Part shown: positions 1,499 to 55,419 of the stretch, in pieces
Layout of the letters: every line of letters starts with the position of its first letter
Numbering within the stretch: the first letter of the stretch is position 1
Made by a program: the position numbers and the translations under genes
Notes under the pieces: generated by a model
The model's input: only the letters and a program-made list of their open reading frames with translations
Told to the model about the DNA's origin: nothing
The model's database searches: none
Source of the DNA: Anaeramoeba ignava BMAN
Taxonomy: Eukaryota; Protista; Anaeramoebae
DNA length: 57,844 bases
Direction: 5' to 3'
Assembly (NCBI GenBank): GCA_028826165.1
Contig: JAPDFW010000040.1
Coordinates: 1-57,844, forward strand

Positions 1499-2657
1499 AT
1501 GAATCAAAACCAAAACCAAAACGAATTACAAAAATTTAAAGAATTTTTAATAAAAAAACATCAGAAACAAATTTTATCAATATTTAATAAAAAAAAAACA
1601 TCAGATATCCAAATTTATTGTGGAATTGATAAAAGAATACTTTATTGCCATAAATCCATTTTGACTGCTCGTTCATTAACTTTTTTAACCAAAATTTTTG
1701 AAAAACAACAGACAAAATTAACATTTAATAATTTTCATTCAAATATTGTTACACCAATAATGGAATATATTTATAGTGGAGAATTATCTTTTAATAAAGA
1801 AGAATTTGATAAATATTGGGAATTTGCTAATCAAAATAAGTTAAATGATGTTAAAAAACAAATTGAACTTGAAATGAAAGAATATCTACAACTTGATAAT
1901 ATTGCTATCATTTATTTCAAAAGTCAAAACATTTCATCTAAATTTCTTATTGAAAAATGTGAAGAATTTATTATTCCAAATATTCAACAAATTATTCAAA
2001 GATTTGATTTCAAAAATTCACAACTTGAACAAAATATCAGTTTTATTGGATTAATTTCCTTACATCAATCAATTCAAAACAAATTTCAATTATTACAACT
2101 TTTTCAACAAAAATGGAAAGAAAATACCCAAGAAAACATTTACAAATTATTACAAAAACAAAAGAAAGAAGGATTAAATCGAAATTCATTAATTAAATTA
2201 AACCAAAACGAAACTATTAATTCTCAAGAAAAAGAAGAATATTTTGATAATGATAAATTCTTTTCAATTTTATTCACACAAATTCAACAAACACAAACAT
2301 TTACTTTTCAACAATTTCAACAAATCAAAAAAAAATCATTTAATTTAAATGAAACCAAATCCATTTTATTAAATTCAAATATTGAAGAAGAACTTAAAGA
2401 AGAAGACAAAAGAATAATATCTTGTTATAACTTCAATGCAATTAAATATCAAACAGAAAAAAGAATTGAAGAAAAAAAAGAACAAATTAAATCAGAAACA
2501 AGAAAATTAAAAAGGAAAAAAGAAAAAATTGAACAAATGAAACAAAAACAAAAACAAAAACAAAAACAAGAACAAAAACAAGAAATTACTCAATCATTAG
2601 ATGAAGCAAAAATTTATTTTACAAAACTTAAAAATTCAATTCAAGAAAATGATAAAG
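1499..2657 (+). CDS. Exon 1 of a large BTB-ARM-ankyrin gene: BTB/POZ domain, BACK-like helices and a K/E/Q-rich coiled coil
   Basis: BTB signature TSDIQIYC...YCHKSILTARSLTF...IMEYIYSGEL. The exon most plausibly ends at the phase-1 donor G|GTATAA at 2657/2658, so the last codons of the 1499..2680 ORF are intronic. Confidence 0.85.
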
Positions 2658-2732
2658 GTATAATTTTCTTTCAATTTTAAAAACAAAAACAATTTTATTT
2701 TATTTAAATTATTTATTTAACAAAAATAATAG

Positions 2733-3230: not shown

Positions 3231-3361
3231 AAAACAAAACACAAATTGAAACCAATTCTGGAATTGATACAATAATTTCAACAATGGTTAATTTTACAGA
3301 AGATAAAGAAATTTATAACAAAGGAATTGAAGCTTTAGGAGTTCTAGGTTTAAACAAAAAG
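3231..3361 (+). CDS. Armadillo-like repeat exon 3
   Basis: AAG acceptor, GTAAAT donor. [44 protein letters not shown] has the ARM-like ENK..I...GI..II..M pattern. Confidence 0.75.
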
Positions 3362-3497
3362 GTAAATTTCTTTTCATATTTATTATTTCACAAACAAAAT
3401 ACAAAAATTATTTTGATTGAATATAAATTTATTTCAATTTGAAAAACAAATATAAATATTAATTTATTTTTATTAAATTTAATAAAACAAAATAGAG

Positions 3498-8400: not shown

Positions 8401-9157
8401 ATTTTTTGAGGAAATTTTTTTATTTAATAAATCAATGAATCTGAATATTGAAAGAATAATTTTCTTTTACAAAGTGAAATAACTTCAAAAGTGATTCTTT
8501 TTCTTTTTTTTACAGAAATATTATTTATTTTTTCATGTTCATATTTTGAAAAGAAAATAAAATACAATAATAAATAATAAATAAATCAACATTATTTTCT
8601 TTTGGAAATATAATTTAATTAAAAAAATAATATCAAAATAACAAATTATTATTTTCTAAAATTAAAAATCAAAAATAAAATTAAAATGAGGAATAATATT
8701 TTTATTTTAAAAACCAAAAATTAATTTATTTTTAAAATTAATTAAATAGAAAAAATCAAAAAAATCAAAAATCAAAATAAATAAAAAAATAAAAAAAAAT
8801 CAAAAAATCAAAAAAAATCAAAATTAAAATCAAAATCAAAATCAAAATCAAAATCAAAATCAAAAATCAAAATAAAATCAAAAAATCAAAATCAAAATCA
8901 AAAATCAAAATCAAAATCAAAAAAAATAAAAATCAAAATCAAAATAAAAAAAAAATCAAAAAAATCAAAATCAAAATCAAAATCAAAAATCAAAAATCAA
9001 AAAAAAAAAAATCAAAAAGAAAAATCAAAAATCAAAATTAAAATCAAAAATCAAAATCAAAAATAAAAATCAAAAATTCAAAAAAAAAAAAAAGATATTT
9101 TTTATTAAATAAAATCAATATATAAATATAAATCAAAATCAAAAAAAAATAAAAAAG

Positions 9158-9160
9158 GGA
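9158..9160 (+). CDS. 3-nt microexon GGA (Gly)
   Basis: aaaaAG GGA GTAAAT, 103 nt upstream of the ankyrin exon. Supplies the consensus G of G-x-T-P. Confidence 0.65.
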
Positions 9161-9263
9161 GTAAATATACATAAATAAATTTCAATTTAAAATAAACTTC
9201 TAAATTAATTAAATTTTTAAAATTAAATTAAAATTTTTTTGGAAAATTTAAAAAACTCAAAAG

Positions 9264-9363
9264 AAAACACCAATTCATTATTTGTTTTGAAAATAAATCA
9301 ATAACAGAAGAAATTATTAAATTAATGATTGAAAACAAAGGAATTAATTTAAACCTTCAAGAT
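9264..9363 (+). CDS. Ankyrin repeat exon A2, first copy (apparent +1 frameshift in a T run)
   Basis: AAG acceptor, GTAAAT donor. Removing one T gives KTPIHYLFENKSITEEIIKLMIENKGINLNLQD. Confidence 0.6.
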
Positions 9364-9565
9364 GTAAATTATTTTTTGAATTTAAATAATAAATAATAAA
9401 TAAATCAAACATTATTTTCTTTTGGAAATATAATTTAATTAAAAAATAATATCAAAATAACAAATTATTATTTTCCAAAATTAAAAATAAAATTAAAATG
9501 AAGAATAATATTTTTATTTCAAAACTCAAAAAATTAATTCATTTTTTTTAAAATTAATTAAATAG

Positions 9566-10412
9566 AAAGTATTCAAAAAAATCAAAATCAAAATCAAAAT
9601 CAAAATCAAAATCAAAATCAAAATCAAAATCAAAATCAAAAATAAAAAATCAAAAATCAAAAAAAAATCAAAAATCAAAATCAAAAAAATCAAAATCAAA
9701 TCAAAAATCAAAATCAAAAATCAAAAATAAAAATCAAAATCAAAAAAAAATCAAAAATAAAAAATCAAAATAAAAATAAAAAATCAAATCAAAAAAAAAA
9801 ATCAAAAAAAAAAAAAATCAAAATAAAAAAATCAAAATCAAAATTAAAATCAAAAATCAAAATTAAATTTTTGGAAAAATTAAAAATCAAAAAAAAAATC
9901 AAATTCATTAAAATTCAAAATCAAAATCAAAAAAAAAAGAAATTAAAAAATTAAAATTCAAAACAAAAATCAAAAAAAAAATCAAAAAAAAATTTTTGAA
10001 AAATAAAAAATAAATAAATCAAAATTATTTTTTTGGAAAATAAAAATTAAAAATAAAATCAAAAATCAAAAAATTAAAATCAAAATCAAAAATCAAATTA
10101 AAATGAAAAATAAAAATCAAATCAAAAAAAAAAAAATAAAATTAAAAATAAAATCAAAATCAAAAATTAAAAATCAAAATTAAAATCAAAAAAAAAAATC
10201 AAAATCAAAATCAAAAAAATCAAAATCAAAATCAAAATCAAAATCAAAATCAAAATCAAAAATCAAAATCAAAAATCAAAAATCAAAATCAAAATTAAAA
10301 ATCAAAATCAAAATCAAAAATAGGATGTAAAATTCAAAAAAAAAAGATATTTTTTATTAAATAAAATCAATATATAAATATAAATCAAAAATCAAAAAAA
10401 ATAAAAAAGGGA
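9566..10412 (+). CDS. Three 3-nt microexons: AAA 9566-9568 (K), GAT 10324-10326 (D), GGA 10410-10412 (G)
   Basis: TAG AAA GTATTC; TAG GAT GTAAAA; AAG GGA GTAAAT. Spliced they give QD-K-D-G-KTPIH, the ankyrin consensus hairpin. Confidence 0.75.
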
Positions 10413-10515
10413 GTAAATATACATAAATAAATTTCAATTTAAAATAAACTTCTAAATTAATTAAATTTTTAAAATTAAATTAAATTTTTTTTGGAAAATT
10501 TAAAAAACTCAAAAG

Positions 10516-10615
10516 AAAACACCAATTCATTATTTGATTTTGAAATAAATCAATAACAGAAGAAATTATTAAATTAATGATTGAAAACAAAGGAATTAAT
10601 TTAAACCTTCAAGAT
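10516..10615 (+). CDS. Ankyrin repeat exon A2, second copy (also 100 nt, frameshifted at the same spot)
   Basis: Near-identical to 9264-9363, with AAG acceptor and GTAAAT donor. Confidence 0.6.
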
Positions 10616-10900
10616 GTAAATTATTTTCCTTTTTTTATTTAAATTTCAAATAATTTTGAAGCAAAAAAAAAGGAAATTTTGATTTTAATTTGATTTCCAT
10701 TATTAATTTCCTGAAAATATATAAATTAATGATCCATTTCATAATTAATGATTTAATATTTAATTCTTTTATTCATTAATTTATTCATTTGAAATTTAAT
10801 AATTAAAATTGAATGAAGAATTATTGAAAAAAAATATTGGTTTTGAATTTAATTTTCAATTCCTTTTTATTTTTTTTTGGAAAATTATTTATTTAATTAG

Positions 10901-11093
10901 AAAGTAAAGAAAATCAATTTCCTTTCATTTTCTTTTTGACAATTTTTTACAATTTCCTTTCAATTTCCTTTCTTTTTGAAAATAGTTTGTAAAATCAAAA
11001 AATCAAAAAATCAAAAAGAAAAAAGACATTTTCTAACCAAAATATTCACCTAAATCAATTTAACAAATTAACAAATTAACAATTAACAAGGGA
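10901..11093 (+). CDS. Three 3-nt microexons: AAA 10901-10903 (K), TTT 10986-10988 (F), GGA 11091-11093 (G)
   Basis: TAG AAA GTAAAG; TAG TTT GTAAAA; AAG GGA GTAAAA. The following introns are 82, 102 and 82 nt. Spliced product QD-K-F-G-KTPF. Confidence 0.8.
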
Positions 11094-11175
11094 GTAAAAA
11101 AAATCTTAATTTAAATTCAAAAAAAAAATAAATTAATTTAAAGGGAAAAATAACAAAAAAAAATCAAAATGAAAG

Positions 11176-11262
11176 AAAACTCCTTTCTATTATTTATACC
11201 TCAATCCTTCCGTAACAATGGAGATGATTCAATTCTTGATAGACAAAGGATATTTACAAGAA
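11176..11262 (+). CDS. Ankyrin repeat exon A3 (87 nt, phase 0-0)
   Basis: AAG acceptor, GTAACA donor. KTPFYYLYLNPSVTMEMIQFLIDKGYLQE. Confidence 0.8.
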
Positions 11263-11769
11263 GTAACAAAATTTATGATTTTTTTTCCTTTTGTTTTAAT
11301 TTTTTTTGAATAAATTTCAATTTCCAAAAAAAAAATCAAAATTAAAAAAACAAAAACAATTAAAACAAGAAATGAAATTGGAATATAAATATAATTTGAG
11401 AATAAGAAAAAATAAATTTAATTCATGTTTTATTTTTTTAATTAAAATTCCAATTTATTTTTTTTCTTCTCTAAATTTTTATTCTCTTTATTCAATTTTT
11501 AATAATTCTTAATTCAAAATAATTTTTAATTTTAATTTTGATTTTAATTTAGAATTTTTTTTTAAAAATTTCAATTTCTGAAAAGATAATTATTAATATT
11601 CCTTGATAATTTGAAATAAAATTATAAGAAATGATAATTATTTATTTACAAAATTTAAAATTAATTTTCTTTTTCTTTTTCATTTGATTTTGAAATTTTT
11701 CTAATCATTTCCATAATAAATTGCAAATTGAAAATCAAATTTTCACACAAAAATTTTACAAATTTGAAG

Positions 11770-11834
11770 ATCAATACTGTTGAAATTGAAAAGGAATTAA
11801 AGCTTTGGATGATGAATTTAACAAATCAGATTAT
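11770..11834 (+). CDS. Probable linker exon (needs one extra A in an A run)
   Basis: AAG acceptor, GTAATT donor. With the correction it reads INTVEIEKGIKALDDEFNKSDY, resembling the 3651-3718 linker (..LKRLKEEYRKSKP). Confidence 0.45.
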
Positions 11835-11927
11835 GTAATTCAAAACAAAAACAAAACAAAACAAAAACATTTTTAATTTAATTTAATTTAATTTTAATTT
11901 TATTTAATTTTAAAAAAATAAATTTAG

Positions 11928-11936
11928 AAAAAGAAG
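11928..11936 (+). CDS. 9-nt microexon AAA AAG AAG (KKK)
   Basis: TTTAG acceptor and GTTTGA donor. Same position in the module as the 3826-3834 exon. Confidence 0.45.
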
Positions 11937-12093
11937 GTTTGAATTATTTTTTGATTAAAATTAACAACAATTAGTTCTTTAATTTATTAACTCATTTTTA
12001 TTATTTAAATTATGAATAATTTGTTTTAATTCATTTATTTTTTTGAATTATTTTGTTTTTCCAATATTAAATTTAAAAACAAAAATAAAAAAG

Positions 12094-12195
12094 AATGGAG
12101 CAACTTTATTACATTATTTTGCACAAAAGAAACCAATTAATAAGGATCTTTTTAATCATTTTATTAATTCAGGAGCTGATTGGAATAAACAAGAT
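12094..12195 (+). CDS. Ankyrin repeat exon A4 (102 nt, phase 0-0)
   Basis: AAG acceptor, GTAAAA donor. NGATLLHYFAQKKPINKDLFNHFINSGADWNKQD is a paralog of A1. Confidence 0.85.
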
Positions 12196-12362
12196 GTAAA
12201 ATAATATAAAATTTTTTCAATTTAAATTACATTTTTATTATTCAAAAACAAAAACAAAAACAAAAACAATTAAATTAAAATTATTTTATTTAAATAATAA
12301 ATAAATATCAAAAATAATCAATTTTTATTTTAAATTGAATAATATTAAATTATTTATAATAG

Positions 12363-12477
12363 GAAGTAAAAATAAATCAAAATCAAAATTTACTTTTTTT
12401 TCTTTTTCTTTTTGAAAAAAATGAATTATTTATTGAATGAAAATTTGTTTTTATTTTATTTTGAAAAAAAATAGTAT
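12363..12477 (+). CDS. 3-nt microexons GAA 12363-12365 (E) and TAT 12475-12477 (Y)
   Basis: TAG GAA GTAAAA; TAG TAT GTAAAA. Confidence 0.7.
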
Positions 12478-12638
12478 GTAAAAATAAACATTTTTTTTGT
12501 GATTTTTCTTTTGAATAAAAATAAAAACAAATTTCCCAAATAAAATAATATTTATTTAGTTCATTTGAAAAAAAAAATAATTTTAAATTTAATTTAATTT
12601 AATTTAATTTAATTTGAAATTGGGGAAATATCAAATAA

Positions 12639-15600
12639 GATTTTGATTTTTAATTTTATTAAGAAAATCATAAGTGAGATTTCTACATGTTTTTTTTATG
12701 TTTTTTTTGAAGTAATTTTGATAAAAAAAAATAAAAGGAAAATGGAATAATTCATTTTTAAATTAATTTTTATAATCATATTCTATTTAATCTTTCAATT
12801 AAGAATAATCTATCAAATAATCTGTATAATATTCTGATTATTCTTTTCATTATTTTGATTCTAACTCTAATTCTGATATCTTTGTTAATTTATATTTCCA
12901 AATATTCTTTGTATCCTTTCTTAGATTTATTTTCTTTGTTATAATTTATTTTCTTTGAATTTTTCTTTCTTCTTTTTGAATTTGTTTTTATTTTTGAATT
13001 TGTTTTTATTTTCAGAATTATCCTTGTTATTTATCTTATTAATTTTATTCTCATTATTGAATTTGATATTTGAATTTGATTTTCTTCATTATTTCTCATT
13101 TTCTATTCATCTTTCTTATATTATATTCTATTTCCCATTAACTATAAATTATGATATAATTTCAAATATCTTCTGAATATATTCTATTGTTTATTTTTTC
13201 ATATATTTACCTTCTGTTAATTTCTTTTATTAGTTTTTTTTTGTTTATTTATTTAATTGAATGAATTGATTTTTATTCATTTATTTCTTATTTCTTGATA
13301 AATTTAATATTTACAAATAAAGAAAATAATTTAATATTTCTTTTCTTTTTCTTTAAATAACATAGATATATATTTCATATTATTATTTTTTTCATTTAAT
13401 AAGTATATTTATTGATTCCATTTATGAAAATTATTAATTTTAGAAGAATAATATTTTTTTTATTGATATTTTAGATATTTTTTTTATTCTTTGATTTTTT
13501 TTTTGGTTTATAATTTAATTATTTCTAAATAAATTATTTTTTTTTCTATCCTTGATTCATTCTAATTTCTTTTTATCTTTCTAAAAAATAAATATTCTTT
13601 GAATTATTTTGAAATATTTTGTATTCCTTATTTCTATCTTATTTATAAAGATTGAATATAATTTCTTGAATTAAGATTTTCTAATTTTATTTTAATTTTT
13701 TTCTATTATTTTCTATCTTCTTATATTTATTTGAATTATGAAATTAGAAATGTTTATTTCATTCCAAAAAGTCAAAATATATGAATATAAATTAATTTTT
13801 TTTAAATAAACTTGATTTAATATGTTTATTAACAATTAAATTTATTCTTTGATATTATTTCTTTTTTTATTAATAATAATAATATTAGGGTTTTTGTTAC
13901 ATAATATAATTATGTAAGAATTGTTATTTTATAAATAATTATTTTATAAATGATTTGAAATATTATTTAAATTGATTATAAACCTTAATTAATTAATTAA
14001 AAAATTGTTTTTTTTTCTGAATTTTTTTTTGAATATTATTTTCAATATATTTATTTGAATTAAGAATAATTTCAAGATATTTAATATTTCCTTTTTATTT
14101 TTATTTTTATTTTTATTTGATTTTAATTCATAATTTTCAAGAATTGTTGTTAATATTATTTGAACTTTAAATACAATTTCTATATATGAAAATTTTTTAT
14201 ATCAATATAATCATATAATCAATAATAAATTTTATCTCTTCAATAATAAAATGATTAATCATTCCAAATATTAAAAAAGGGATAAATAATATTTCTCTTT
14301 CTGATTTATTCAATATTTATTTACCTTATAATATTTATTTAAGAAGTTTTAAATAATAATAATAATATTGATGAAATTTGATAATAATTTTTCTAATTAA
14401 TTTTCTAATTAATTATATCAAAATATTTTTGAATATTTATATTTATTATATAAGGTTATTTTATTTATATTAATTTATTTTGTAATTTTAAAATTTCTAT
14501 TCTTATATTCATTATTTTTTCTAAATCCAATTTATTTATACAAAATATATTCTCATAATAATTTAATTTATTCAAATATTCTTTTCAAAAAAAAATAATA
14601 AATATTCTTATTAATAAATTATTTATAGATAAACATAATTCTTCTTGAAAACATTTAATTTATTACTTTTGGATTCATATTCTTTATTTATTCTTTCATT
14701 ATTCTGTTTATTTATTTAATAAATTGATAATAATAATATTTTTGAATTTTCTTTTTTTCAATATAATATAATATAATATAATAATTTTTGATAAATTTTT
14801 TTATCTTATTATATTCATAAATTGAACTATTTCTTGAATTTTAAATTATTTTTTATTAATTTATTATAAGGAATTATTTATTTAATTTATTTAATATCAA
14901 ATTGTATGATTATTATTTTATTTTCTATTTTATTTTATTTTATTTTATTTAAATATTGATTCTTTAACTTGTATTTTAATTTCATCAATAAGTTATTTAA
15001 ATTATTTTTTATTTATTATTAAATATAATATCTTTTTCTTTTCTTTTTCTTATTCTTCTTTTCATTTCAATTCATTAATTTATTTATCTATTTTTTATTA
15101 TCTATTTTTTATTCCTCAAAATATTTTTTATCAATATTATTTACTTTTTTTTTTGAATTAAATTATGTTAAATTAATTCCAATCTTAATTTTTTTATCTA
15201 TTTATATTTATATTTATATATAAATTTTCTTTTCTTAAATTTATTATCTTTTATATTTCTAATTATTGAAATATTGAGAATTGATTTCTGATTTAAATTT
15301 TTTTTTGATTTCTCAATTCTTCTCATTATTATATCTTGAAATTATTATTTTATTGATTGATAATATTTCTTTTTTTCTTTTTTCTTTTTCTTTTTCTTTT
15401 CTTCTTGATTAATATTTATTTTTGTTTTTGAGATAATTTTTATTTTTAATTTAATTTTTGATTTCCAAAAAAAATGATTTATATTTCTTATTACATTATT
15501 TTGAATATTAAATATGATTTGAGTATTAAATCACAAATGTTTTTTTTTCAATTTTATTTGTTTATTTGATTAAAATATCCTCATCTTATTATATATTTTT

Positions 15601-17360
15601 ATTTCCTTTCCTAATTTTTTTTTCAATTATTTGATTTATTTTATTCATAATTTGATATTGATTTATATATTTCATATATTCTCTAATAACATTTAATTCT
15701 TCTATTTTAATTTATATTAATATTTTTATTATAATTGTTAATTTATTGAGTATATTTACTTATATATATATTATTTGATAAATATTTTTATTCCTATTTG
15801 ATTTATTTCTTAAATTAATAATAATTTTCAAAATATATTCTTTTTTCTCAAATATATTTCTTGTATTATGGAAATTGTTATTCTTTATTTTAGAAATATA
15901 TTTTTAAATTTATTTCTAATTTTTTTTTTGAGTTTTATTTATTCTATTTAATTCATTAATATTAATAAATAAATTATATTTTAAATTTAGAATTGATTTA
16001 TTTTTTGTGAATTTAATTCATTTTATTATTTCAATTTTCTTTCTTTTTTAATATTTTTAAATAAATTTTGAATATTTTTTTTATTTGATATTTTATTCTT
16101 TCATTTTTAAAATTTCAAAAAAAAAGAGTTAATATATTATTTTTATTTTTATTTTGAATAATTCCTAATAGATGAAAATTGATAATATTATTAATAATTT
16201 CAAATATATTAAGAAATGATTTTCTGATAATTAATTTATATAAATTTAAAATTTGTAATATCTTGTTTTAATTAATTTTTAATTTAATATTTTTGAATTT
16301 CTATATTTAATTTGATTTTTTTTCTTTAAATTTATATCTATTTCCTAATTTTATAAAAATAAGAAAAAAATTTTGATATTTCTTGTTATAAATTATTTAT
16401 TTATTATTTTTATAAATTTTTAAATAAGAATAATTAACACTTTTATTTATAAATTATTCAAAATCTTTTTTATTTTTATTTGAATAATTTTAATTTAATT
16501 TAATTTAATTTTAATTTAATTTAATTTAAAGAATTACTTTTTTTTTGTATTATTTCTTTAATCTTATTTAAAATATTATTTCTCATATTTTTTTTATTGA
16601 TTAGATTGAATATTTTCAATTTCTTTCTTTCTTATTAATTAATTAAATTTAATTTTTTTGATAAATTATTTTTTTTATTATTTTGATTTTTCAAATAAAT
16701 AAATTTATCTTGTTTTGTAATTATCTCTTATCTTAGATATTTTAACTAAATAAATATAAATATAAATATAAATATAAAATATAAATATAAATATAAATAT
16801 AAATATAAATATAAATATAAATATAAATATATAAATATAAATATAAATATAAATATAAATATAAATATAAATATAAATATAAATAAAATATAAATAAATA
16901 TAAATATAAATATAAATATAAATATAAATATAAATATAAATATAAATATAAATATAAATATAAATATAAATATAAATATAAATATAAATATAAATATAAA
17001 TATAAATATAAATATAAATATAAATATAAATATAAATATAAATATAAATATAAATATAAATATAAATATAAATATAAATATAAATATAAATATAAATATA
17101 AATATAAATATAAATATAAATATAAATATATTCCTCTTTTCATCTTATTATTTATTCCTTTATAATCTCTCTATCTTTCATAACCTTAAAATATAAATCT
17201 ATATTATTATTATTTCTCTTCAATTAACCTTTAATAATTTAATAAGATTTTAATATATTTATTAAATTAAATTAAATTAAATTAAATTAAATTAAATTAA
17301 ATATATTTGGAAATTAATGGAAAATCTTAATAAATATACAAAATTTCCTCAATTTAATTA
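12639..17360 (-). mobile_element. Full-length degenerate LINE relic of the same family as the intact element
   Basis: The 3' end TTAAGAAAATCATAAGTGAGATTTCTACATG matches 39981-40011. There is 41-nt identity between 16201 and 43731. The RT region near 14260 matches the region near 41812. The 5' end GAAATTAATGGAAAATCT near 17310 matches 44446. Confidence 0.9.
16747..17130. repeat. (TAAATA)n microsatellite inside the ORF1 region of the LINE relic
   Basis: About 64 near-perfect hexamer units, with LINE homology resuming on both sides. Confidence 0.95.
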
Positions 17361-17450
17361 TTTTATTTTTTTCAAAAACAAAAAACAAAAAACAAAAAAC
17401 AATTTAAATCTAATCTTTTCTTTTTAAATTAAAAATAAATAATAAATTAG

Positions 17451-17453
17451 GAT
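17451..17453 (+). CDS. 3-nt microexon GAT (Asp)
   Basis: TAG GAT GTAATT with CTAAT near 17410. Completes QD-E-Y-D-WSPVH. Confidence 0.7.
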
Positions 17454-17647
17454 GTAATTTTATTTATTATTTTAATTTTGATTTTCAAAAAAACACAAAA
17501 AAATATTATTTCAAAAATTATAAATTTTTTAATTTTAAATAACAAAAAAAATATAAGAGAAAATTATTTAAAATATAAATTAAAGAGAAATTTATTTTTT
17601 AATTTAATTTAATTTAATTTAATTTATTATTTCAAAACAAAAAAAAG

Positions 17648-17743
17648 TGGTCTCCAGTTCATTATTTATGTAGGAATGAATCAATTACATTTGATATGAT
17701 TAAATTATTAGTTGATAATGGAGCTAATTTTAATTTAAGTGGA
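17648..17743 (+). CDS. Ankyrin repeat exon A5 (96 nt, phase 0-0)
   Basis: AAG acceptor, GTAAGT donor. [32 protein letters not shown]. Confidence 0.9.
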
Positions 17744-21127: not shown

Positions 21128-21402
21128 AGAGTAATTATTTCCAAAAAATTAAATAATAATAATCAAAATATTATTTTTTTTTAAATTTAAATTGTTTTTT
21201 ATTTTAATAAAATTTTATTTTTAAAAATAAATCTAATAATAATAATAATAATAATAGTTGGTAAATTTTATTTAATAATTTAATTTTCCATTTTATTTTT
21301 AATTTGGAAAACAAAATTTATGAAATTAAAAACAAAAATTTTTGAATTTTTTTCTAAAACTTTTTTTTTTTGAATAATAAATAAAATTAAATAAAATAGA
21401 TT
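21128..21402 (+). CDS. 3-nt microexons AGA 21128-21130 (R), TTG 21258-21260 (L), ATT 21400-21402 (I)
   Basis: TAG AGA GTAATT; TAG TTG GTAAAT; TAG ATT GTAAAA, separated by 127 and 139 nt in otherwise almost G-free DNA. Confidence 0.7.
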
Positions 21403-21719: not shown

Positions 21720-23057
21720 GGGATTGGGATGTATTTGGTTTGCATCCGCTGAAAAGTATATGAATCCGCTTTTTCAATATCGAATGAGCGGAAAAATCTT
21801 TTTCAGCTTATTTCGACTTCTTCGTCGAAAAAAATAAAAAGAAATTGAAATGAAATTTTGTTCTTCATTTTTTTTTCTCAAAGAAGAGAATGAAAGAAAA
21901 ATTGATCAAAGAAAAATTGATCAAAAAAAAATTGGAAGCCAAAAAATTTCAAAAAGAAAAAAAATTTTGATTTTGCTTCTCAGAGTGGATTTCCATTTCT
22001 GATATGATAATTGGTTAGAGCTGCACATATCCCAAAAGTTGTAGAGTATAAATTTACTCTTTCTCCTCTCCAAACTTGATTCATTGAACCCCAAAAATTT
22101 TTCATCCTTGCATAATAATGTTCTATAACAATGCGAGTTCTTGCAATTGTTGCATTGTAAAATTCCGATTCGAGATCTAAATTCCCTCCTCGAGGTTTTT
22201 TGAAAGGAATTTCTGCTTGAGTAGAATGTTGAATCCCAATATACCCTTTATCTGCCATAATAGAATAAGATTGGAACATAGCACTTTCTCCAGAAATTTC
22301 AAAGATTCTTAGATCATGAATAGAACCTTCCACTCCAGTGAAGAAAGACATACACAACCCAGAACATGAATTAATCGTTTGAGATTTTATCACATGGCAT
22401 TTGTGTTTTCCACTAAAATACTTCTTTTGTTCGAATCGATCTTTTGGTCTTTGACACCTTTGACAAGTCACATCCACAATTCCCAATACATTTGGAAATT
22501 CAGCAAATGATGATCCTTGAGCTTCTTGTTCTGCTTTTCCAATCCATCTTATCTGATCTTGAACAAGTATGGGTTCAATTCTTTGAAGTGTGTCAGTAAC
22601 AAGATCTCTTGCCCAAGTTTGAGATATTCCAAAATCACTCCCAAGACGATTCCATGAAGGATAATGTTTTAACCAAACTAAAGTCATCAGAAGAGTTGTT
22701 TCATCAGATAAAATTGTTCTTCTTGCTCCTCTACCCTGTACCTGAAATGCTTCTGCAACAAGATAAAATAGTTGTTGCAATTCTGTAAGATCGAAATTCG
22801 TTAAAATCTTCATCCGATTATCGTCTGAATATTCATCCAAATTCTCATAGCTTATATAACCTTCAAATTGATCATCATCTGAATCAGATTGTTCTTGAAT
22901 CAAATCGGGCTGGTTATTTTGCTCATTTTGTGAATAAAATTCATCAATTTCTTGCATCAAAAAAAATTCAAAAAAAAATTCTTGCGAAAAAAAAATGATC
23001 TGAACAAAATTTACATAAATTCCTTAATATTTTATTGATAAGGATAAATCCCAAATT
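21720..23057 (-). mobile_element. Compact single-ORF PIF/Harbinger/IS5(ISL2)-superfamily DNA transposon, about 1.3 kb
   Basis: Sharp GC rise. The left end GGGATTGGGATGTAT follows TTA, and there is an imperfect inverted match ATAAATCCCAA at 23044-23054. Subterminal ATCCGCT repeats. The right boundary and TSD are uncertain. Confidence 0.7.
21980..22957 (-). CDS. DDE transposase (HTH_Tnp_4 plus DDE_Tnp_4/HARBI1-like), 325 aa from the ATG
   Basis: LLMTLVWLKHYPSWNRLGSDFGISQT (HTH), IVDVT, YFSGKHKCH, GSIHD, ADKGY and RIVIEH..ARMK. Intronless and intact. Confidence 0.92.
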   Translation of the reverse strand: MQEIDEFYSQNEQNNQPDLIQEQSDSDDDQFEGYISYENLDEYSDDNRMKILTNFDLTELQQLFYLVAEAFQVQGRGARRTILSDETTLLMTLVWLKHYPSWNRLGSDFGISQTWARDLVTDTLQRIEPILVQDQIRWIGKAEQEAQGSSFAEFPNVLGIVDVTCQRCQRPKDRFEQKKYFSGKHKCHVIKSQTINSCSGLCMSFFTGVEGSIHDLRIFEISGESAMFQSYSIMADKGYIGIQHSTQAEIPFKKPRGGNLDLESEFYNATIARTRIVIEHYYARMKNFWGSMNQVWRGERVNLYSTTFGICAALTNYHIRNGNPL

Positions 23058-24887: not shown

Positions 24888-25011
24888 TATGTAACAAAAA
24901 ATTGATTTTTAATAATAAATAAATAAAAAATTTTTTTAATTATTTAATTAATTGTTTTTATTTAAAATATATTTTTGATTTTTATTCAATTTAATAAAAT
25001 AATATAAGGAT
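24888..25011 (+). CDS. 3-nt microexons TAT 24888-24890 (Y) and GAT 25009-25011 (D)
   Basis: TAG TAT GTAACA; AAG GAT GTAAAA, the latter 74 nt before exon A6. Confidence 0.7.
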
Positions 25012-25085: not shown

Positions 25086-25181
25086 TATACACCTTTACAT
25101 GATTTATGTCAAAACACTTCAATTACAAAAGAGATGATTGAATTATTATTTGATAAAGGAGCTGATTTTCATATTCAAATT
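25086..25181 (+). CDS. Ankyrin repeat exon A6 (96 nt, phase 0-0)
   Basis: AAG acceptor, GTAAAT donor. YTPLHDLCQNTSITKEMIELLFDKGADFHIQI has canonical TPLH and GAD. Confidence 0.92.
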
Positions 25182-28604: not shown

Positions 28605-30173
28605 AAAGTAAATTATTTATTTAATAATAATATTTTATTTTATTAATCTTTTTTTTTTACATTTCAAGTCAATATCAAAATAAATTTCTTTTTCTTTCTT
28701 TCTAAATTTTTTTTATGGATAAATATTATTTTTATTTTATATTTTTTTATTAATTTTTGGAAAGGAAATAATTAATTAATTAATTAAAAAATAATTTATT
28801 CCAATTTTATTCCTCTTTTTGTTTTTTTTTCCAAATTAAAATTATTTTTATTAAATAAATATTATTTTTGAAAATAAAACCCAAAAAAAAATAATATAAT
28901 AAACTTATTATTATTATTTATTTATTTATAATTTAAAAATAAAATTAAATAAAAAAAAATAAAAAAAAAAATAAAAATAAAAAATTAATTAATTTGAATA
29001 AAATTTATTTAAATAAAAAAAAAACCAATAAATTATTTAAAAATTAAAAATTAAAAATTTAAAATTGAAATTGAAATTGAAATTGAATAAATCTTTTTTT
29101 TTAAAAATTTTAAATTAAATCTAATCTTATTAAAATAATCTTTTTTTTTCTTTTCAAAATATTAAATAGGATGTAAATAAATTAATCCCAAAAAAAATAT
29201 TTGAAAATTAATTTTTCTTTTTTTTATTTATTTTTAAATTAAAAATTTTGAATTTTATTAAATAGAGAGTAAATAATAATTTATTAAAAAAAAAAGAATT
29301 TGAAACAAAAACAAATTTTAAATTTTCTTTTTTTTTTGATTTTTTAAAATCAATTAATTTTAATTTTAATTTTAAAATTTTTAAATTTTTATAAAATAAT
29401 ATTTTTTTTAATCAAAATCAAAATGATATTTTAAAAGAAAAAAAAGAAAATAATTTAAGAATTAATAAATTTTTATTTTATGAAATTTAAAATTAAAAAT
29501 TTTTTAAATTTAAAAAGAATTATTATAAAATAAAATAAATGAAAATTAATTAAAATAAAATAATTTTTAAAGAATTTCTTATTCTAATTATTATCAAATC
29601 AAAATAAAAAATAAAAAATAAATCATTTTTTTTCTTCTATTTCTCTTTATATTTATAAATATTTTTATTTTTAATTTTAAAACTAAAATAATATTTTTGA
29701 TAATAAAAAAATTGATAAAATATTTTACAAATAATTTATTTTTGTTTTACTTTTATAATTTCAATTTTTATTTATTTTCTCATTATCTATTCAATTTTTT
29801 CTAATTTTTGAAATTTATAATTTAAATATTTTAATATTAATAATAAATAAATAATAAATAATAATTATATTATTTATTTAATTAAATAAAAATCTTTTTA
29901 TTTTTATATATTTATTTATTTCATAAATTAGATAAATTTTATTAATTAAATCAATAATAATTTAAATTGAAATTATTCCATTTTTTTCTCTTTTTTTTTT
30001 AAATATTATTTTTATTTCTAAATTCAAAAATAAATTTAAAATTAATTTATTTCATTTTCTTTTTTTTTTCTCATTTTTTTTCATTCTTTCATAAATTATA
30101 TGTATATAAATAAATATATTTTTGATAATTAATAATAAATTAATTTTAATCAAAATATTTTAATAAATAGAGT
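28605..30173 (+). CDS. 3-nt microexons AAA 28605-28607 (K), GAT 29170-29172 (D), AGA 29266-29268 (R), AGT 30171-30173 (S)
   Basis: All four read aaaTAG NNN GTAAAT. Confidence 0.7.
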
Positions 30174-40119: not shown

Positions 40120-43100
40120 TTAGTCGCTCTCTATTGAGCTTTCCAAGGAAGAAGAATCTGGAGCATAATCTGTATCATATTCCGATTCTTTTTCCCATGA
40201 CTTTGTTTCTGATTCTGAATCTGATTCAGATATTTTCGATAGTTGATATTTCCAAGTTTTCTCTGGATTTTTTCTTAGATTTCTTCTTCTGTTATTACTC
40301 TTTATTATCTTTGTTTTTTTCTCTTTTTCATTGGTTTCTCTTTTTTTGTTCTTTTTCTTTTTCTCTTTCTTTTTCTCTTTCTTTTTCTCTTTCTTTTTCT
40401 TTTTCTTTTTCTTTTTCTTTCTTTTTCTTTCTTTTTCTTTCTTTTTCTTTTTTTTGATCTTCATTTCTTTTTGATTTGATTTCTTCTTTTTTGATTTGTT
40501 CCTTACCTTTTTGGGTTTGTTTTTATTCTCATTATCATTTTCATTATTGTTTTCATTATTAATTTCATTATTAATTTCATTATTGTTTTCATTATTAATT
40601 TCATTATTATTTTCATTATTATTTTCATTATTACTTTCATTATTATTCTCATTATTCATGTCACTTTGTTGATTTTCATTTTGATTTCTTTCTTCATTTC
40701 CAATATTCTCTTCATCTATCTCAATTGTATTCTCATCCATTATCATTTCTGATCTAATCTCAAAAGCTTTTTGAATATATTCTATAGTTTTGTCATATAT
40801 TCCCTTTCTGCTAATTTCTTTCATTAATTTAATTGTTTGTTTTATTGGATGTATTGATTTCAACCATTTATTTCTTATCTCTTGATACATTGGACATTTC
40901 CAAAGAAAATGATCCAATGTTTCTTCTTCTTCTCCACAACATGGACATTTCACATCACTATTTCTCATGTGGTGGCTATATGATTTAAGTCCATTTGTGA
41001 ATATTCTTAATTTCATTAATATAGTACTTTTTTGATATTTTAAATATGTTTTTATTTTTGGTTTTTTAGGTTCTAATTTAGTAATTTCTGAATAGGCTAT
41101 TGTTTTCCATCCTGAATTGATACTCATTTCTTGGTGCCTTGCTAAACATAAATATTTTTGGATGATTTTCAAGTTTTGATTCTCCCATATTTTATCATTT
41201 CTCTCTCTTTCATTTGTGAAGATTGGACATAATTCTTTAAGTTCTGATTTTTCAATTTTATCTAATTTTTCTCTTATTTTCCACCTACGCACATTTATTT
41301 GTGTTCTGGAACTGGGGGTATTTGTTTCATTTCGAAAGGTAAGCGTAGGTGAATGAAAGTTTATTTTTAAAATTAATTTCATGTGTTTGTTCACCATTAA
41401 ATCCATTTTTTGATATTGTTTCTTTCTGAGTATTAATGCCTCTGTGCCATAATATAGTTGTGGAAGAATCGTCATTTTATAAATTATAATTTTCAAGTGA
41501 TTAGAAATTTGGTTGGATTGTATTATAAATCTCAATTTTTGAAAAGTTTTTTCACATTTTTCTATATTATTTTCTATATGTTTCTTTGCATCAAGTATAA
41601 TCCCAAGATATTTAACATTCCTTTTTTGTTTTGTTATTATAGTTTTATTTTTATTAGGTCTTAATCCATAATTTTCAAGAATTTGTAATATTGATTGAAC
41701 TTTAGTTATGACTTTATTATAAGAATTTTTTACTAATAGTATCATATCATCAGCATACATTTGGATATGATCAACCCTTAGTTTTATTTCCTCAATTATG
41801 AAGTGACTGACCATTCCAAATATTAAAGGAGATAATGGATCTCCTTGATAAATACCACATCCATTTCCCTTATAATATTCATTTAATAGTTTTTTAATAT
41901 TATTATTGCTGATGAATTTATTAATAACTTTTCTAATTAATCCATGATCAATAGTATCAAAACATTTTTGAATGTCTATACTTATTATATATGGTTCTTT
42001 TATTTCTTTCAATTTCTTTTGTAACTCTAAGACTGCTATTCTTGTATCCATCATTTTTCTAAAACCCATTTGTTGATACGAGATGTATTCCCATATTGGT
42101 TCAATTTCTTCAAGTATTCTTTTCAAAAATATTCTCACTAAAGCATTATTTATAGATATTGGGCGATAATTTGAGATTTGGTTAGGATCCCCTTGTTTAA
42201 AGATGAACACCATTCTTCTTGAAAGCATATATTTTATTACTTCTTGGTTGGGATCTCTTATCCATTCTCTCATCATTCTGTTTACTGATTTGATAAATTC
42301 ATAATATTTTGGATGTTCTCTTTCAATGTAAGGATTTTGATACATTTCGATTTTATCATAATCACAAGTAGAACTATTTCTTGAGTTTTGAATTGTTTTT
42401 ATTAATTTATCATGGGGAAATATTTGTTTGATTGATCTTATATCAGGTTCTATATTTATTATTTTATTTTCTATTTCTTGGAGTATTGATTCTTGAACTG
42501 GAATTTTAATTTTATCTATAAGTTGTTTAAATTCTTTTTCTTTTTCATTATTATTAAATATAATATCTTTTCTAGATTTTGTTATCCTTTTTACTTCTTT
42601 CCAATAATTTGTTTTGCTTTGGTTATCTATTTCTATCCCTCTCATGGTTTCTCTCCACCTTTTCCTTAGAGCTTGTTTCCAATTATATTTATTTTTTGAG
42701 TTAAATTCTGTTAAGTTAATTCCTATCTTATTTTTTGTATTTATATGGATGATACTTCTTTTTTTGAATTTTTCTTTTACATTTTTAATTATTGAAATGT
42801 TGAGCATTGATTTCTCAGATAAATTTTGTTTTCTTAATTTTTCTATTATCATATCTTGGAATTGTTGTTTTGTCGGTTGGTAATATTCTTTTCTCTCTTC
42901 ACTCAATATATTGATTTTCTCAATTGTAACTATCATTTTATGATCTGAGAGATTTTCTTCTTGATTAATATTTACTGTTTGTGATAAAATTTCTCTATTT
43001 TGATTTTTGACGCAGAAATGATCAATATTTCTTATTGCACTATTCTCAGTATTATGTATTATTTGAGTATTAAATCTGAAATGTTTTTCCATTTCTTTGT

Positions 43101-44067
43101 CTGTTTGATTAAAATCTCCTGCTATTATATATCTTTCCTCTCCTAATTTTTCAATAATATCGTTTAATTGACTCATCATTTGAAATTGTGTTCCATGTCT
43201 CATATAGACTCCAATAATATTTAATTCTCCTATTTTAATTTGTATAATATCCTTATCTGGATGTTTTATTTCTTGAGCATATTTTGATATACATTTTTTG
43301 ATGATTATTGCTATTCCTCCTTGTGCTGTTGTTCCATATCCTTGTTTCTCAAATGAATGATAGTTTTCAAAATATAATCTTTTTCTCAAGTGAGTTTCTT
43401 GTATAATAGCAATTGTTATTCTTTGTTGGAGGAATATTTTTTCTAATTTTTGGATCTTTCCTATTTTATTTAGTCCATTGATATTTATAGATGCTATTCT
43501 GAATGAGAATTGATTTATTTTTGTTAATTTAGTTCCTTTTATTGTTTCAATTTTGTTTCCTTCTGTTGTTTTTAATTGAATTTTGAAATTTCTTGGTATT
43601 CTATTTCTTTCATTTTTACAATCTCGAAAAAGATTTAATATGTTATTTTTTCGATCCCATATCTCAGCTTGATGATTCCCTTTTTGAATGATTCTCAGTG
43701 GGTGAAAATTGTTAATAATGTTAAGAATTTCAAATATATTAAGAAATGATTTTCTGATAATTAATTTATATGAATCTAAAATTTGTAGTATCTTGTTAAA
43801 ATTTGTTTCCATATAATATTTTGAATTTCGATAATTAATTGTTTTTCTTAAATTTGTATCAATTTCCCAATTGTGTTGAATCAGAGAATCTGAAATTTCT
43901 TGTTGTAAATTGTGAGTTCTCTGATAACTATATGGATTATGTTGTTTATAAGTTTTTAAATAAGAATAATTAACGCTTTTATTTATAAATTCTTGTAAAT
44001 CTTTTTGAATTATTCTCTTTGATTTCATTTGAGGAATTGCTTTTTGTATTGTTTCTTTTGATCTCAT
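40120..44067 (-). CDS. LINE ORF2: N-terminal extension, APE endonuclease, reverse transcriptase, CCHC zinc knuckle and low-complexity tail (1315 aa)
   Basis: APE motifs SININGL, IQETH, AGDFN, IDH and SDH. RT motifs YRPIS, QMGFR, DIQKCFD, QGDPLSP, YADD and YLG. Knuckle CPCCGEEEETLDHFLWKC. Confidence 0.97.
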   Translation of the reverse strand: MRSKETIQKAIPQMKSKRIIQKDLQEFINKSVNYSYLKTYKQHNPYSYQRTHNLQQEISDSLIQHNWEIDTNLRKTINYRNSKYYMETNFNKILQILDSYKLIIRKSFLNIFEILNIINNFHPLRIIQKGNHQAEIWDRKNNILNLFRDCKNERNRIPRNFKIQLKTTEGNKIETIKGTKLTKINQFSFRIASININGLNKIGKIQKLEKIFLQQRITIAIIQETHLRKRLYFENYHSFEKQGYGTTAQGGIAIIIKKCISKYAQEIKHPDKDIIQIKIGELNIIGVYMRHGTQFQMMSQLNDIIEKLGEERYIIAGDFNQTDKEMEKHFRFNTQIIHNTENSAIRNIDHFCVKNQNREILSQTVNINQEENLSDHKMIVTIEKINILSEERKEYYQPTKQQFQDMIIEKLRKQNLSEKSMLNISIIKNVKEKFKKRSIIHINTKNKIGINLTEFNSKNKYNWKQALRKRWRETMRGIEIDNQSKTNYWKEVKRITKSRKDIIFNNNEKEKEFKQLIDKIKIPVQESILQEIENKIINIEPDIRSIKQIFPHDKLIKTIQNSRNSSTCDYDKIEMYQNPYIEREHPKYYEFIKSVNRMMREWIRDPNQEVIKYMLSRRMVFIFKQGDPNQISNYRPISINNALVRIFLKRILEEIEPIWEYISYQQMGFRKMMDTRIAVLELQKKLKEIKEPYIISIDIQKCFDTIDHGLIRKVINKFISNNNIKKLLNEYYKGNGCGIYQGDPLSPLIFGMVSHFIIEEIKLRVDHIQMYADDMILLVKNSYNKVITKVQSILQILENYGLRPNKNKTIITKQKRNVKYLGIILDAKKHIENNIEKCEKTFQKLRFIIQSNQISNHLKIIIYKMTILPQLYYGTEALILRKKQYQKMDLMVNKHMKLILKINFHSPTLTFRNETNTPSSRTQINVRRWKIREKLDKIEKSELKELCPIFTNERERNDKIWENQNLKIIQKYLCLARHQEMSINSGWKTIAYSEITKLEPKKPKIKTYLKYQKSTILMKLRIFTNGLKSYSHHMRNSDVKCPCCGEEEETLDHFLWKCPMYQEIRNKWLKSIHPIKQTIKLMKEISRKGIYDKTIEYIQKAFEIRSEMIMDENTIEIDEENIGNEERNQNENQQSDMNNENNNESNNENNNENNNEINNENNNEINNEINNENNNENDNENKNKPKKVRNKSKKKKSNQKEMKIKKKKKKEKERKRKKKKKKKKKKEKKKEKKKEKKKKNKKRETNEKEKKTKIIKSNNRRRNLRKNPEKTWKYQLSKISESDSESETKSWEKESEYDTDYAPDSSSLESSIESD

Positions 44068-44495
44068 TTTAAAATATTTTCATGTTTCTCTTGATTAGAT
44101 TGAATATTTTCAATTTCTTTCTTCTTAATTATTAATGGATTCTTAATAAAGTTATTTGAATTCAATGTTTGATAAATTATTTTTTCTATATTTTCTTTAT
44201 GTGACCGTTGATTTCGATCCGTTATTTTTTCTTTTAATTTCTCAAGTTGATTTTCTTTTGAAGTGTAACTCTCTCTTGCTTTAGATACTGTAATTGAATA
44301 ACCTTCTCTCCATGTTCTTCTTTGTTCTTTTCTTGCTTTCTTATCGTGAATTACTTTAAAGTGTCCATCGGTACTATCCTTATTCCTTCTCAAGTATCCT
44401 CTCACTATTTTATATGGTTTTAATATGTCAAAGAAGACATGTTTTGAAATTAATGGAGAGTCTGCATAAACATACAGGTTTCCCCATTTGTCCAT
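44064..44495 (-). CDS. LINE ORF1, 143 aa from the first ATG, possibly RRM-like
   Basis: Lies upstream of ORF2 with an ATGA stop/start overlap. NLYV...GHFKV...ITVSKAR resembles RRM strand spacing. The ORF-track start at 44504 is a TTG. Confidence 0.75.
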   Translation of the reverse strand: MDKWGNLYVYADSPLISKHVFFDILKPYKIVRGYLRRNKDSTDGHFKVIHDKKARKEQRRTWREGYSITVSKARESYTSKENQLEKLKEKITDRNQRSHKENIEKIIYQTLNSNNFIKNPLIIKKKEIENIQSNQEKHENILK

Positions 44496-44519
44496 TTTTT
44501 TCAAAGAAAAAAAAAAAAA

Positions 44520-45271: not shown

Positions 45272-45513
45272 GATGTAATTATTTTATAAATTTTAATTAC
45301 AATCAAAATCAATTAAAAAGAAAAAGAAAAAGAGAAAGAAATAATAATAATAATTCTTTCTTATTTAAAAATAATTTAATTAATAAAATATTTCTTTTCT
45401 TTTTTAAATATAAATTTAAATTTAAATTTTAAAAAAATAGTTGGTAAATTTTGAATAAAAAAAAAAAAAATTAATAAATTAAAATAATATAAAAATAAAT
45501 AAATAAATAGAGA
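45272..45513 (+). CDS. 3-nt microexons GAT 45272-45274 (D), TTG 45441-45443 (L), AGA 45511-45513 (R)
   Basis: TAG GAT GTAATT; TAG TTG GTAAAT; TAG AGA GTAAAA. Confidence 0.7.
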
Positions 45514-50634: not shown

Positions 50635-50730
50635 GAATCTCCACTTCATTATTTATGCCAGAACAAATCAATTACAACAGATATTATTAGGATTTTGATT
50701 AATAAAGGAGTTAATTTCAATTTACAAAAA
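50635..50730 (+). CDS. Ankyrin repeat exon A8 (96 nt, phase 0-0)
   Basis: TTAG acceptor, GTAAAA donor. [32 protein letters not shown]. Confidence 0.9.
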
Positions 50731-52048: not shown

Positions 52049-52051
52049 ATT
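52049..52051 (+). CDS. 3-nt microexon ATT (Ile)
   Basis: aaaTAG ATT GTAAAT. Confidence 0.6.
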
Positions 52052-55000: not shown

Positions 55001-55419
55001 ATATGATTATGAAATGAATAAACGAGAAATTATTGAATAAAAATAGTAAATATAAAATGATTAAAAGTGAGAAAGATAAATAATTAGAAAGAAAAGAAAA
55101 AAAGAAAATTTCAATAAATATTTCTTTATAAAATGTTTTAAAAATAATAAAAACAAAAATAAAAATAGAAACAAAGAAAAAAAAAAGAATTTTATAATAA
55201 TAATATTATATATATATAAAATTAACACTCAAATCAATAATATAAGAAATTATTTTATTTTTATATTTGTGAAATTAAATAATTTCAATAAAAATAAAAA
55301 TAAAAATAAAATAAAAACAATCATTTTAATTTGAATAAAAAAATCAATTATTGAAAAGAAAAAAATTAATATTTAAAGGGAAAAGAGATAATTCCTTTTT
55401 CTTTTAATTAAATTTCTCA

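Follow-up and report, generated by a model that had tools for sequence, protein, structure and literature searches.

Coding sequence divided into very short exons has been described in several systems. The micro-exon genes (MEGs) of schistosomes were reportedly characterized by DeMarco et al. in 2010 as long runs of short symmetric exons whose lengths are multiples of three, and a tapeworm genome paper is said to use the phrase "consecutive micro-exons"; the skipping of MEG exons is thought to permit protein variation. In recursive splicing, as at the ratchet points of Drosophila Ubx and the recursive-splicing exons of vertebrates, zero-length exons of the form AG-GTAAGT serve the removal of very long introns. 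Introners are mobile, near-identical introns found in Micromonas, Aureococcus, fungi, and dinoflagellates. Isolated micro-exons of 1 to 3 nucleotides (nt) are known from animals and plants, with 3-nt examples in Drosophila homothorax and human MAP4K5 and 1-nt examples in plant APC11 and VPS55 (PMC7392893, PMC8632122, PMC8831610). Neighboring micro-exons measure 5 and 12 nt in rice and 3, 18, and 22 nt in RPS24. Here, we describe runs of 3-nt islands of the form AG-NNN-GTA that lie between the ankyrin-repeat exons of the protist Anaeramoeba ignava. The window analyzed is the entire contig JAPDFW010000040.1 (C42; 57,844 nt) of the A. ignava assembly (42.8 Mb, 147 contigs). The islands are likely to be real single-codon exons of spliceosomal genes, genome-wide, and from their sequence signatures we infer that they are included in the mRNA.

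Three-nucleotide islands in the window and the genome

The window is 87% A+T, and short plus-strand exons, richer in G+C, encode ankyrin repeats of the type xTPxHYLCxNxSITxxMIxLLxxxGAxFNLxx. The ten islands pointed out in an earlier sequence-only reading all lie at the positions given for them and all have the form AG-NNN-GTA on the plus strand; the donor is GTATTC after the island at 9566 and GTAA after the other nine. The first of them, GGA (Gly, 9158-9160, in the context aaaaag-GGA-gtaaat), lies 103 nt upstream of ankyrin exon A (9264-9363). The gap at 9364-10515 then holds AAA (Lys, 9566-9568), which has a 755-nt (AAAATC)n satellite as its next intron, GAT (Asp, 10324-10326), and GGA (Gly, 10410-10412), a duplicate of the 9158 unit. 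The gap at 10616-11175 holds AAA (Lys, 10901-10903), TTT (Phe, 10986-10988), and GGA (Gly, 11091-11093), and the gap at 12196-17647 holds GAA (Glu, 12363-12365), TAT (Tyr, 12475-12477), and GAT (Asp, 17451-17453), the last lying 4,973 nt beyond the Tyr island. Each gap contains three islands and no further plus-strand AG-NNN-GTA, and in order the islands read K-D-G, K-F-G, and E-Y-D. The exons upstream of the three gaps end in ...NLQD, ...NLQD, and ...NKQD, and those downstream open with KTP, KTP, and WSP.

Sixteen more plus-strand islands lie beyond the first ten, between 21128 and 56449. They include AGA 21128, TTG 21258, and ATT 21400 (21128-21402); TAT 24888 and GAT 25009 (24888-25011); AAA 28605, GAT 29170, AGA 29266, and AGT 30171 (28605-30173); GAT 45272, TTG 45441, and AGA 45511 (45272-45513); and ATT 52049, GAT 56274, and GAT 56449 (52049-56451). 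The excess at a spacing of three bases that the earlier reading had anticipated is borne out by the counts: plus-strand AG-N(k)-GTAA occurs 4, 10, 6, 24, 3, 5, and 1 times for k = 0 to 6, and over spacings of 0 to 12 the 24 sites at k=3 compare with 0 to 10 at every other k. On the minus strand there are 5 sites at k=3. Counted on both strands, AGNNNGTAA has 29 matches against 7.31 ± 3.15 in dinucleotide shuffles, none of 100 shuffles having reached 29.

The islands are not confined to this contig. A genome-wide count of the 13-mer AATAG-GAT-GTAAA gives 58 occurrences, versus none for its reversed control, and all ankyrin loci with short open frames have islands on the coding strand. In 171 kb of ankyrin and motif loci, a set that includes three arrays of cloned introns described below, the coding strand has 486 non-redundant islands and the opposite strand 15. 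Only 1 of the 486 is a stop codon, compared to 44.6 expected from trinucleotide frequencies (P=2e-19). The G+C content of island positions 1, 2, and 3 is 41%, 27%, and 4.5%, with G in 31% of first positions and A or T in 95% of third positions; this gradient is that expected of codons in an A+T-rich genome. The splice consensus is AAATAG-NNN-GTAAAT, with A at donor position +4 in 93% of cases. In 179 kb of family loci examined for k=0 to 30, the k=3 class comprises 469 coding-strand and 4 opposite-strand sites, no other k exceeds 48, and spacings of 6, 9, and 12 are not enriched, so the single-codon exons form a class of their own rather than the tail of an exon-size distribution. 

The published genome is 80.65% A+T overall, and its 32,108 introns, 91.86% A+T (8% G+C), have a modal length of 76 nt and range from 35 to 4,168 nt (PMC11550330). 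The median spacer from one island to the next is 76 nt, equal to this modal length, and the flanking introns thus fit the range of the host spliceosome. Each island is bounded by the ordinary splice signals of the organism, with short ordinary introns between neighbors. A first look at the genome also gave more than 100 intronless actin genes, 7,824 ankyrin candidates, and more than 150 TLD-domain matches (556 first-look candidates). The intronless ankyrin open reading frames (ORFs) L014, L021, L025, and L031-L034 carry AG-N6-GTAA at 15 to 27 sites per 3 kb, because a coding motif is repeated within their tandem ankyrin repeats. Coding repeats can therefore create spacing peaks, and the composition of the flanks needs checking.

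The longest runs lie outside the ankyrin genes. Arrays of 20 to 62 consecutive 3-nt islands occur on contigs C137 (L001, 610500-616000, plus strand) and C57 (L002, 593500-597500, minus strand), with further such arrays on C1 (L003, 409000-411500, minus strand) and C87 (271-278 kb). The array with 62 islands lies at 610.5-615.3 kb of C137. Their introns are near-identical, 69 to 105 nt long, and of the form GTAAATAATTAAAT...ATTATTTAATAAATAG, and their islands spell low-complexity peptides that are Ser/Asp/Glu/Asn-rich, Lys-rich, or hydrophobic. One near-identical short intron family, GTAAATAATTAAAT...ATTTAATAAATAG, flanks 178 islands on both sides. The array introns differ from each other at 5 to 11% of sites and the codons between them at 50 to 67%; the arrays show no excess of adjacent identical codons (10 versus 10.7 expected), and the cloned introns carry no signature of target-site duplication. 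From this pattern the arrays look like introns that spread between pre-existing codons rather than duplicated units. Tandem duplication of a codon together with its intron was rejected as their origin, there being no adjacency signal and the codons being 5 to 10 times more divergent than the introns, and target-site duplication was ruled out on the same evidence.

Ankyrin loops, paralogues, and public gene models

The expected ankyrin period is reached only when the islands are counted. In the canonical ankyrin genes L037, L011, and L040, each 32-codon exon is followed by one island, giving D-x-x-G-x-T-P-L-H and a period of 33 residues. One canonical gene lies at 30682-33777 of C10. Repeats in intronless ankyrin ORFs of this genome are spaced by 33 (40 cases) or 34 (10 cases) residues and never by 32. 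The annotated A. ignava proteins of the subfamily found in the window, which lack the islands, have a period of 32; the homologues in A. flamelloides have a period of 35 in 37 cases and of 32 in 3 cases. For the window subfamily, 32 codons plus three islands make 35, matching the A. flamelloides period. Lys is common at the three extra positions in both species, and 17 of 30 A. ignava triplets have K first.

Domain profiles place the missing residues in the same part of the repeat. Pfam Ank aligns exons E (WSPVHYLC...NFNLSG, 17648-17743; Ank and Ank_3), F (YTPLHDLC...ADFHIQI, 25086-25181), and G (ESPLHYLC...NFNLQK, 50635-50730), each of 32 codons on the plus strand, from position 3 to position 30 or 31 of 33. 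Since the alignment starts at profile position 3, the "d-G" positions are missing from the exons. The plus-strand exon D (NGATLLHY...ADWNKQD, 12094-12195, 34 codons) matches Ank positions 1 to 32, and the ankyrin-like exon C (KTPFYY...GYLQE, 11176-11262, plus strand, 29 codons, open) has no Pfam match alone. Taken singly, the exons score 15.8 to 22.4 bits against PF00023 and PF13606, for which the cut-offs are 21.1 to 22.3; E and G reach the Ank_3 cut-off, and D and F fall below it. Entire paralogous proteins contain PF00023, PF12796, PF13606, and PF13637.

Conservation at the DNA level was compared among paralogues, and the comparison with A. flamelloides is one of annotated proteins. Between paralogues on contigs C71 and C20, the AG and GTA borders are kept at 36 of 36 islands, with 92% identity in the intron columns, and between two tandem copies with many intron insertions and deletions the island codons are identical at 10 of 10 islands. 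Particular residues recur at particular places. The chain before every [WYH]TPLHDLC exon ends in an aromatic residue followed by Asp, which in the window corresponds to the Tyr island at 24888 and the Asp island at 25009 before exon F. A Trp island is recurrently the fourth after the WSPVHY-type exon, and the middle aromatic residue of the window's 12475 island is kept in K-Y-K, N-Y-K, and K-Y-N. The triplets K-D-G, K-D-K, K-Y-K, and G-E-E recur although the chains vary in length and sequence. One island is variable among close copies: seven near-identical copies of exon E (that of the window and those of L042-L047, with about 400 nt of flank) have GAT, AGA, or AAA as the upstream island, at 17451 in the window, amounting to three base changes within 3 nt with the flanks nearly unchanged.

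Public gene models omit these codons. A stranded poly(A)+ RNA-seq data set (HiSeq 4000, 2x100) exists for A. ignava BMAN and was mapped with Hisat2 for the gene models (PMC11550330). As the sequence-only reading had expected of gene predictors, the models KAJ5072428.1, KAJ5069518.1, and KAJ5069519.1, of compact paralogues that are presumably expressed, connect the large exons straight to one another and miss the islands. The annotated "introns" of KAJ5072428.1, at about 546-554 kb of C71, are 328 to 1,106 nt long and hold 2 to 7 islands each; those of KAJ5069519.1 and KAJ5069518.1, at 125-132 kb of C93, are 326 to 1,075 nt long and hold 2 to 13 islands each, and in the longer chains the islands are about 60 to 90 nt apart. 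KAJ5072428.1 twice enters a Gly island and then reads A-rich intron as protein ("GVKQIIQ..." and "GVKQNKTK..."; positions 12685-12852 and 17536-17592 of the C71 loci L071+L072), and the model KAJ5067457.1 (L004, 145-170) ends likewise in intron sequence ("SVKNIISR*"). The published proteome thus contains some artefactual segments. A profile-free search with exon 17648-17743 retrieved annotated multi-repeat A. ignava proteins that share their exon sequences with loci of the present set. A search with KAJ5072428.1 found only NCBI genome models and no transcript-derived homologue.

The proposal of the sequence-only reading that the ankyrin loop is built codon by codon finds support in the stop-codon avoidance, the G+C gradient, the strand bias, the 76-nt spacers, the conservation, and the restored period. 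Its figure of exactly three exons per loop describes the commonest case: chains in the window's family hold 0 to 13 islands, canonical genes hold one, and the non-ankyrin arrays reach 62.

Proposed splicing model and rival explanations

In the model we favor, each short intron would be recognized individually, by intron definition. Given the footprints of the spliceosome, a 3-nt exon is too small to accommodate U1 (donor) and U2AF (acceptor) simultaneously, so intron removal would have to proceed in order: the loss of one flanking intron would merge the codon into a longer exon and make the next intron spliceable. The process would amount to a ratchet akin to recursive splicing, with one codon left behind per step. 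In the protein, the large exons of 32 codons would supply the two helices, and the island codons the tip of the beta-hairpin between repeats. Canonical 33-residue repeats would take a single codon for that tip; in the xTPxHYLCxNxSIT subfamily, to which the window belongs, the commonest number would be three (K-D-G, K-D-K, K-Y-K, or G-E-E), and some loops would take up to 13. A tentative extension, which we think has clearly less than an even chance of being correct, is that the genome spreads short introns through coding sequence in a strict one-codon register, yielding runs of as many as 62 single-codon exons for ankyrin hairpins in the window and for low-complexity and other loops elsewhere, and permitting the choice of subsets at splicing and so residue-by-residue variation of loops. 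The discrete 3-nt size class, the contrast between little-diverged cloned introns and strongly diverged codons, and the single island that varies among copies of exon E all point in this direction.

Several observations weigh against reading the islands as exons. The loci used for the statistics were picked for ankyrin exons or for the motif; the stop-codon and codon-position tests are independent of that selection. RNA-seq-informed public models contain no 3-nt exons. The distant metagenomic homologues P0003 and P0007 have continuous 32-residue repeats, which makes a loop lacking the three residues structurally feasible. In the window, exons A and B are frame-broken, the intron implied between 12475 and 17451 exceeds by its 4,973 nt the longest annotated intron of the genome, and the near-identical copies are without the downstream island chains that compact paralogues have. 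The omission of all islands from the NCBI models, the near-identical intron family around 178 of them, and the viability of 32-residue repeats would fit islands that never reach the mature mRNA, the stretch between the large exons being removed whole or piecewise and the islands being by-products of intron multiplication, such as scars of mobile introns. We consider this very unlikely, since scars would neither avoid stop codons nor produce the G+C gradient by position, nor would they keep particular residues in diverged paralogues. Discarding the three bases would require a regenerated donor, that is, an island starting with GT, and none is seen, nor is the zero spacing enriched; target-site duplication would duplicate adjacent islands, and identical neighbors are no more frequent than expected. 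The annotation pipeline called a 12-nt exon, KNNE, and no 3-nt exon; 3-nt exons therefore lie beyond its reach, and the NCBI models are not usable as evidence for island skipping. Chance can be given practically no weight. AG-NNN-GTA is common in A-rich DNA, and the count in the window is inflated by duplication of one unit (9100-9365 and 10350-10616), so that two of the ten islands are copies; the shuffle test, the strand ratio of 469 to 4, the lack of any other enriched spacing, and the diverse flanks refute it. A choice among islands deserves more attention, although we regard it as unlikely too: they would be optional, frame-neutral cassettes, with the subset used differing among transcripts and varying hairpin tips and loop lengths. 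All islands are symmetric (phase 0-0, 3 nt), and any subset would therefore preserve the frame; paralogous chains have anywhere from 0 to 13 islands, the island preceding exon E varies within near-identical flanks, and ankyrin repeats usually bind through the hairpin tip. The residues fixed by position (aromatic-Asp, Trp, and K-D-G) and the exact periods of 33 and 35 argue for mostly constitutive inclusion, which we favor because the periods are exact and the residues conserved. Some room is left for combinatorial use, because every island is frame-neutral and chain length is variable.

The genome-wide reading of the islands as exons is compatible with a separate doubt that is limited to the window, namely that this copy is a dead segmental duplicate whose islands are fossil and which gives no working message. 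For this, the balance is about even, and judging from the sequence the productive expression of this particular copy likewise has an even chance. In exon A (KTPIHY...NLNLQD, plus strand, 100 nt) and its duplicate, exon B (10516-10615, plus strand, 100 nt), the KTPIHY frame and the ...NLQD frame are offset by one base; the KTPIHY frame meets a stop after eight codons (after KTPIHYLF in exon A), and exon B carries a TGA in the 3' frame as well, so that both of its candidate frames have stops. The residues that the earlier reading gave for the exon ends are right, but in A and B those ends lie in different frames. With two flanking exons broken, this locus probably cannot make productive use of the first join, DKDGKTP, or of half of the second. 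Satellites of the (AAAATC)n and (ATAAAT)n types occupy the introns, together with a LINE and a DDE transposase ORF; 100%-identical copies of exon E occur on four other contigs, several of them near the low-coordinate contig end; and the entire contig is just 57.8 kb long. On the other side, exons C, D, E, F, and G are open with their splice sites retained, and the islands retain AG and GTA together with the conserved residues of the family, such as Y-D before exon F. The window locus is a swollen paralogue of the compact genes on C71, C20, and C93, with introns filled by satellites and transposons, and decay has probably set in, at least in its first part. The islands it carries were inherited with the system and do not prove that this copy makes protein.

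Two genes are probably present in the window. In the first, which is frame-broken, an ARM-like part with N-terminal exons at 2750-2917 and 3284-3442 (plus strand) leads to exons A to C; the second starts near 11.7 kb, and a 9-nt micro-exon, AAAAAGAAG (11928-11936, plus strand, between ttag and gtttga), probably belongs to it. This micro-exon is a homologue of the NCBI-annotated 12-nt exon KNNE in KAJ5069518.1. Just upstream of the ARM-like exons is an intronless BTB/POZ-domain gene (1499-2677, plus strand, Pfam E=3.5e-12). The implied introns carry microsatellites private to the window, (AAAATC)n twice and (ATAAAT)n once (9569-10321, 8760-9090, and 16750-17120), and the (AAAATC)n intron continues right up to the next island's acceptor. 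A LINE-type retrotransposon ORF of 1,315 amino acids (40120-44067, minus strand), assigned by eye, lies inside an implied intron of the plus-strand ankyrin gene, with a 146-amino-acid ORF upstream of it (44064-44504, minus strand). Between the islands at 21400 and 24888 is a 326-amino-acid ORF (21980-22960, minus strand) resembling a Harbinger/DDE_Tnp_4 transposase, also assigned by eye. Rfam gave no match in the window, the exons of the window are absent from all 151 proteins collected, and three window ORFs have no exact entry in the protein collection.

Relation to known systems

The earlier reading knew of no described equivalent, and our search agrees with it: the literature searched gave isolated micro-exons, plant micro-exon families, and RPS24, with no description of runs of single-codon exons and none of micro-exons in Anaeramoeba. 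The A. ignava genome paper, in its text and supplements, does not mention micro-exons (PMC11550330). If confirmed by RNA, exon fragmentation in this free-living and culturable protist would be more extreme than any other known, with stretches of protein encoded by single-codon exons at hundreds of places in one genome. The spliceosome would have to handle back-to-back 3-nt exons routinely, which would leave only models in which introns are removed in order, and the published proteome would be systematically wrong, with every ankyrin hairpin absent from those NCBI models that were checked. Cloned introns spaced 3 nt apart by unrelated codons bear on how introns multiply and open that process to study; spread in codon register, if true, would amount to a new mode of intron generation as well as a novel means of protein diversification.

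Each of the described systems shares something with the A. ignava islands. MEGs have exons of 6 to 36 nt that account for the bulk of a small secreted protein, whereas the A. ignava exons are single codons that would encode only the loops of a repeat protein; here, most of the coding sequence is in exons of 87 to 102 nt, and sizes of 6 to 30 nt are not enriched; no signal peptide or homology to MEGs was seen, though no search aimed at either was made. The likeness to recursive splicing lies in stepwise removal at internal AG-GT sites, the next donor being offered at once after joining. Recursive splicing leaves nothing in the mRNA, whereas the A. ignava steps would leave one codon each, with introns of about 76 nt, and zero-length sites number 4 to 5 on the plus strand of the window versus 6 to 9 on the minus strand (15 versus 9 in the 179 kb of family loci). 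Introners resemble the one near-identical short intron family found in many copies elsewhere in the A. ignava genome; within the window, the introns are mutually different and carry private satellites. Known introners insert in a dispersed manner that ignores codon register, whereas the A. ignava copies stand exactly 3 nt apart for dozens of codons. The isolated micro-exons of animals and plants are also spliceosomal, 1 to 3 nt long, bounded by canonical AG and GT, conserved, and missed by aligners and annotation. Those occur singly or with at most two or three neighbors, among normal exons and long introns; in A. ignava, there are hundreds of 3-nt exons in uninterrupted runs of 3 to 13, and up to 62, separated by 76-nt introns. 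Runs of single-codon exons would be an extreme form of micro-exon.

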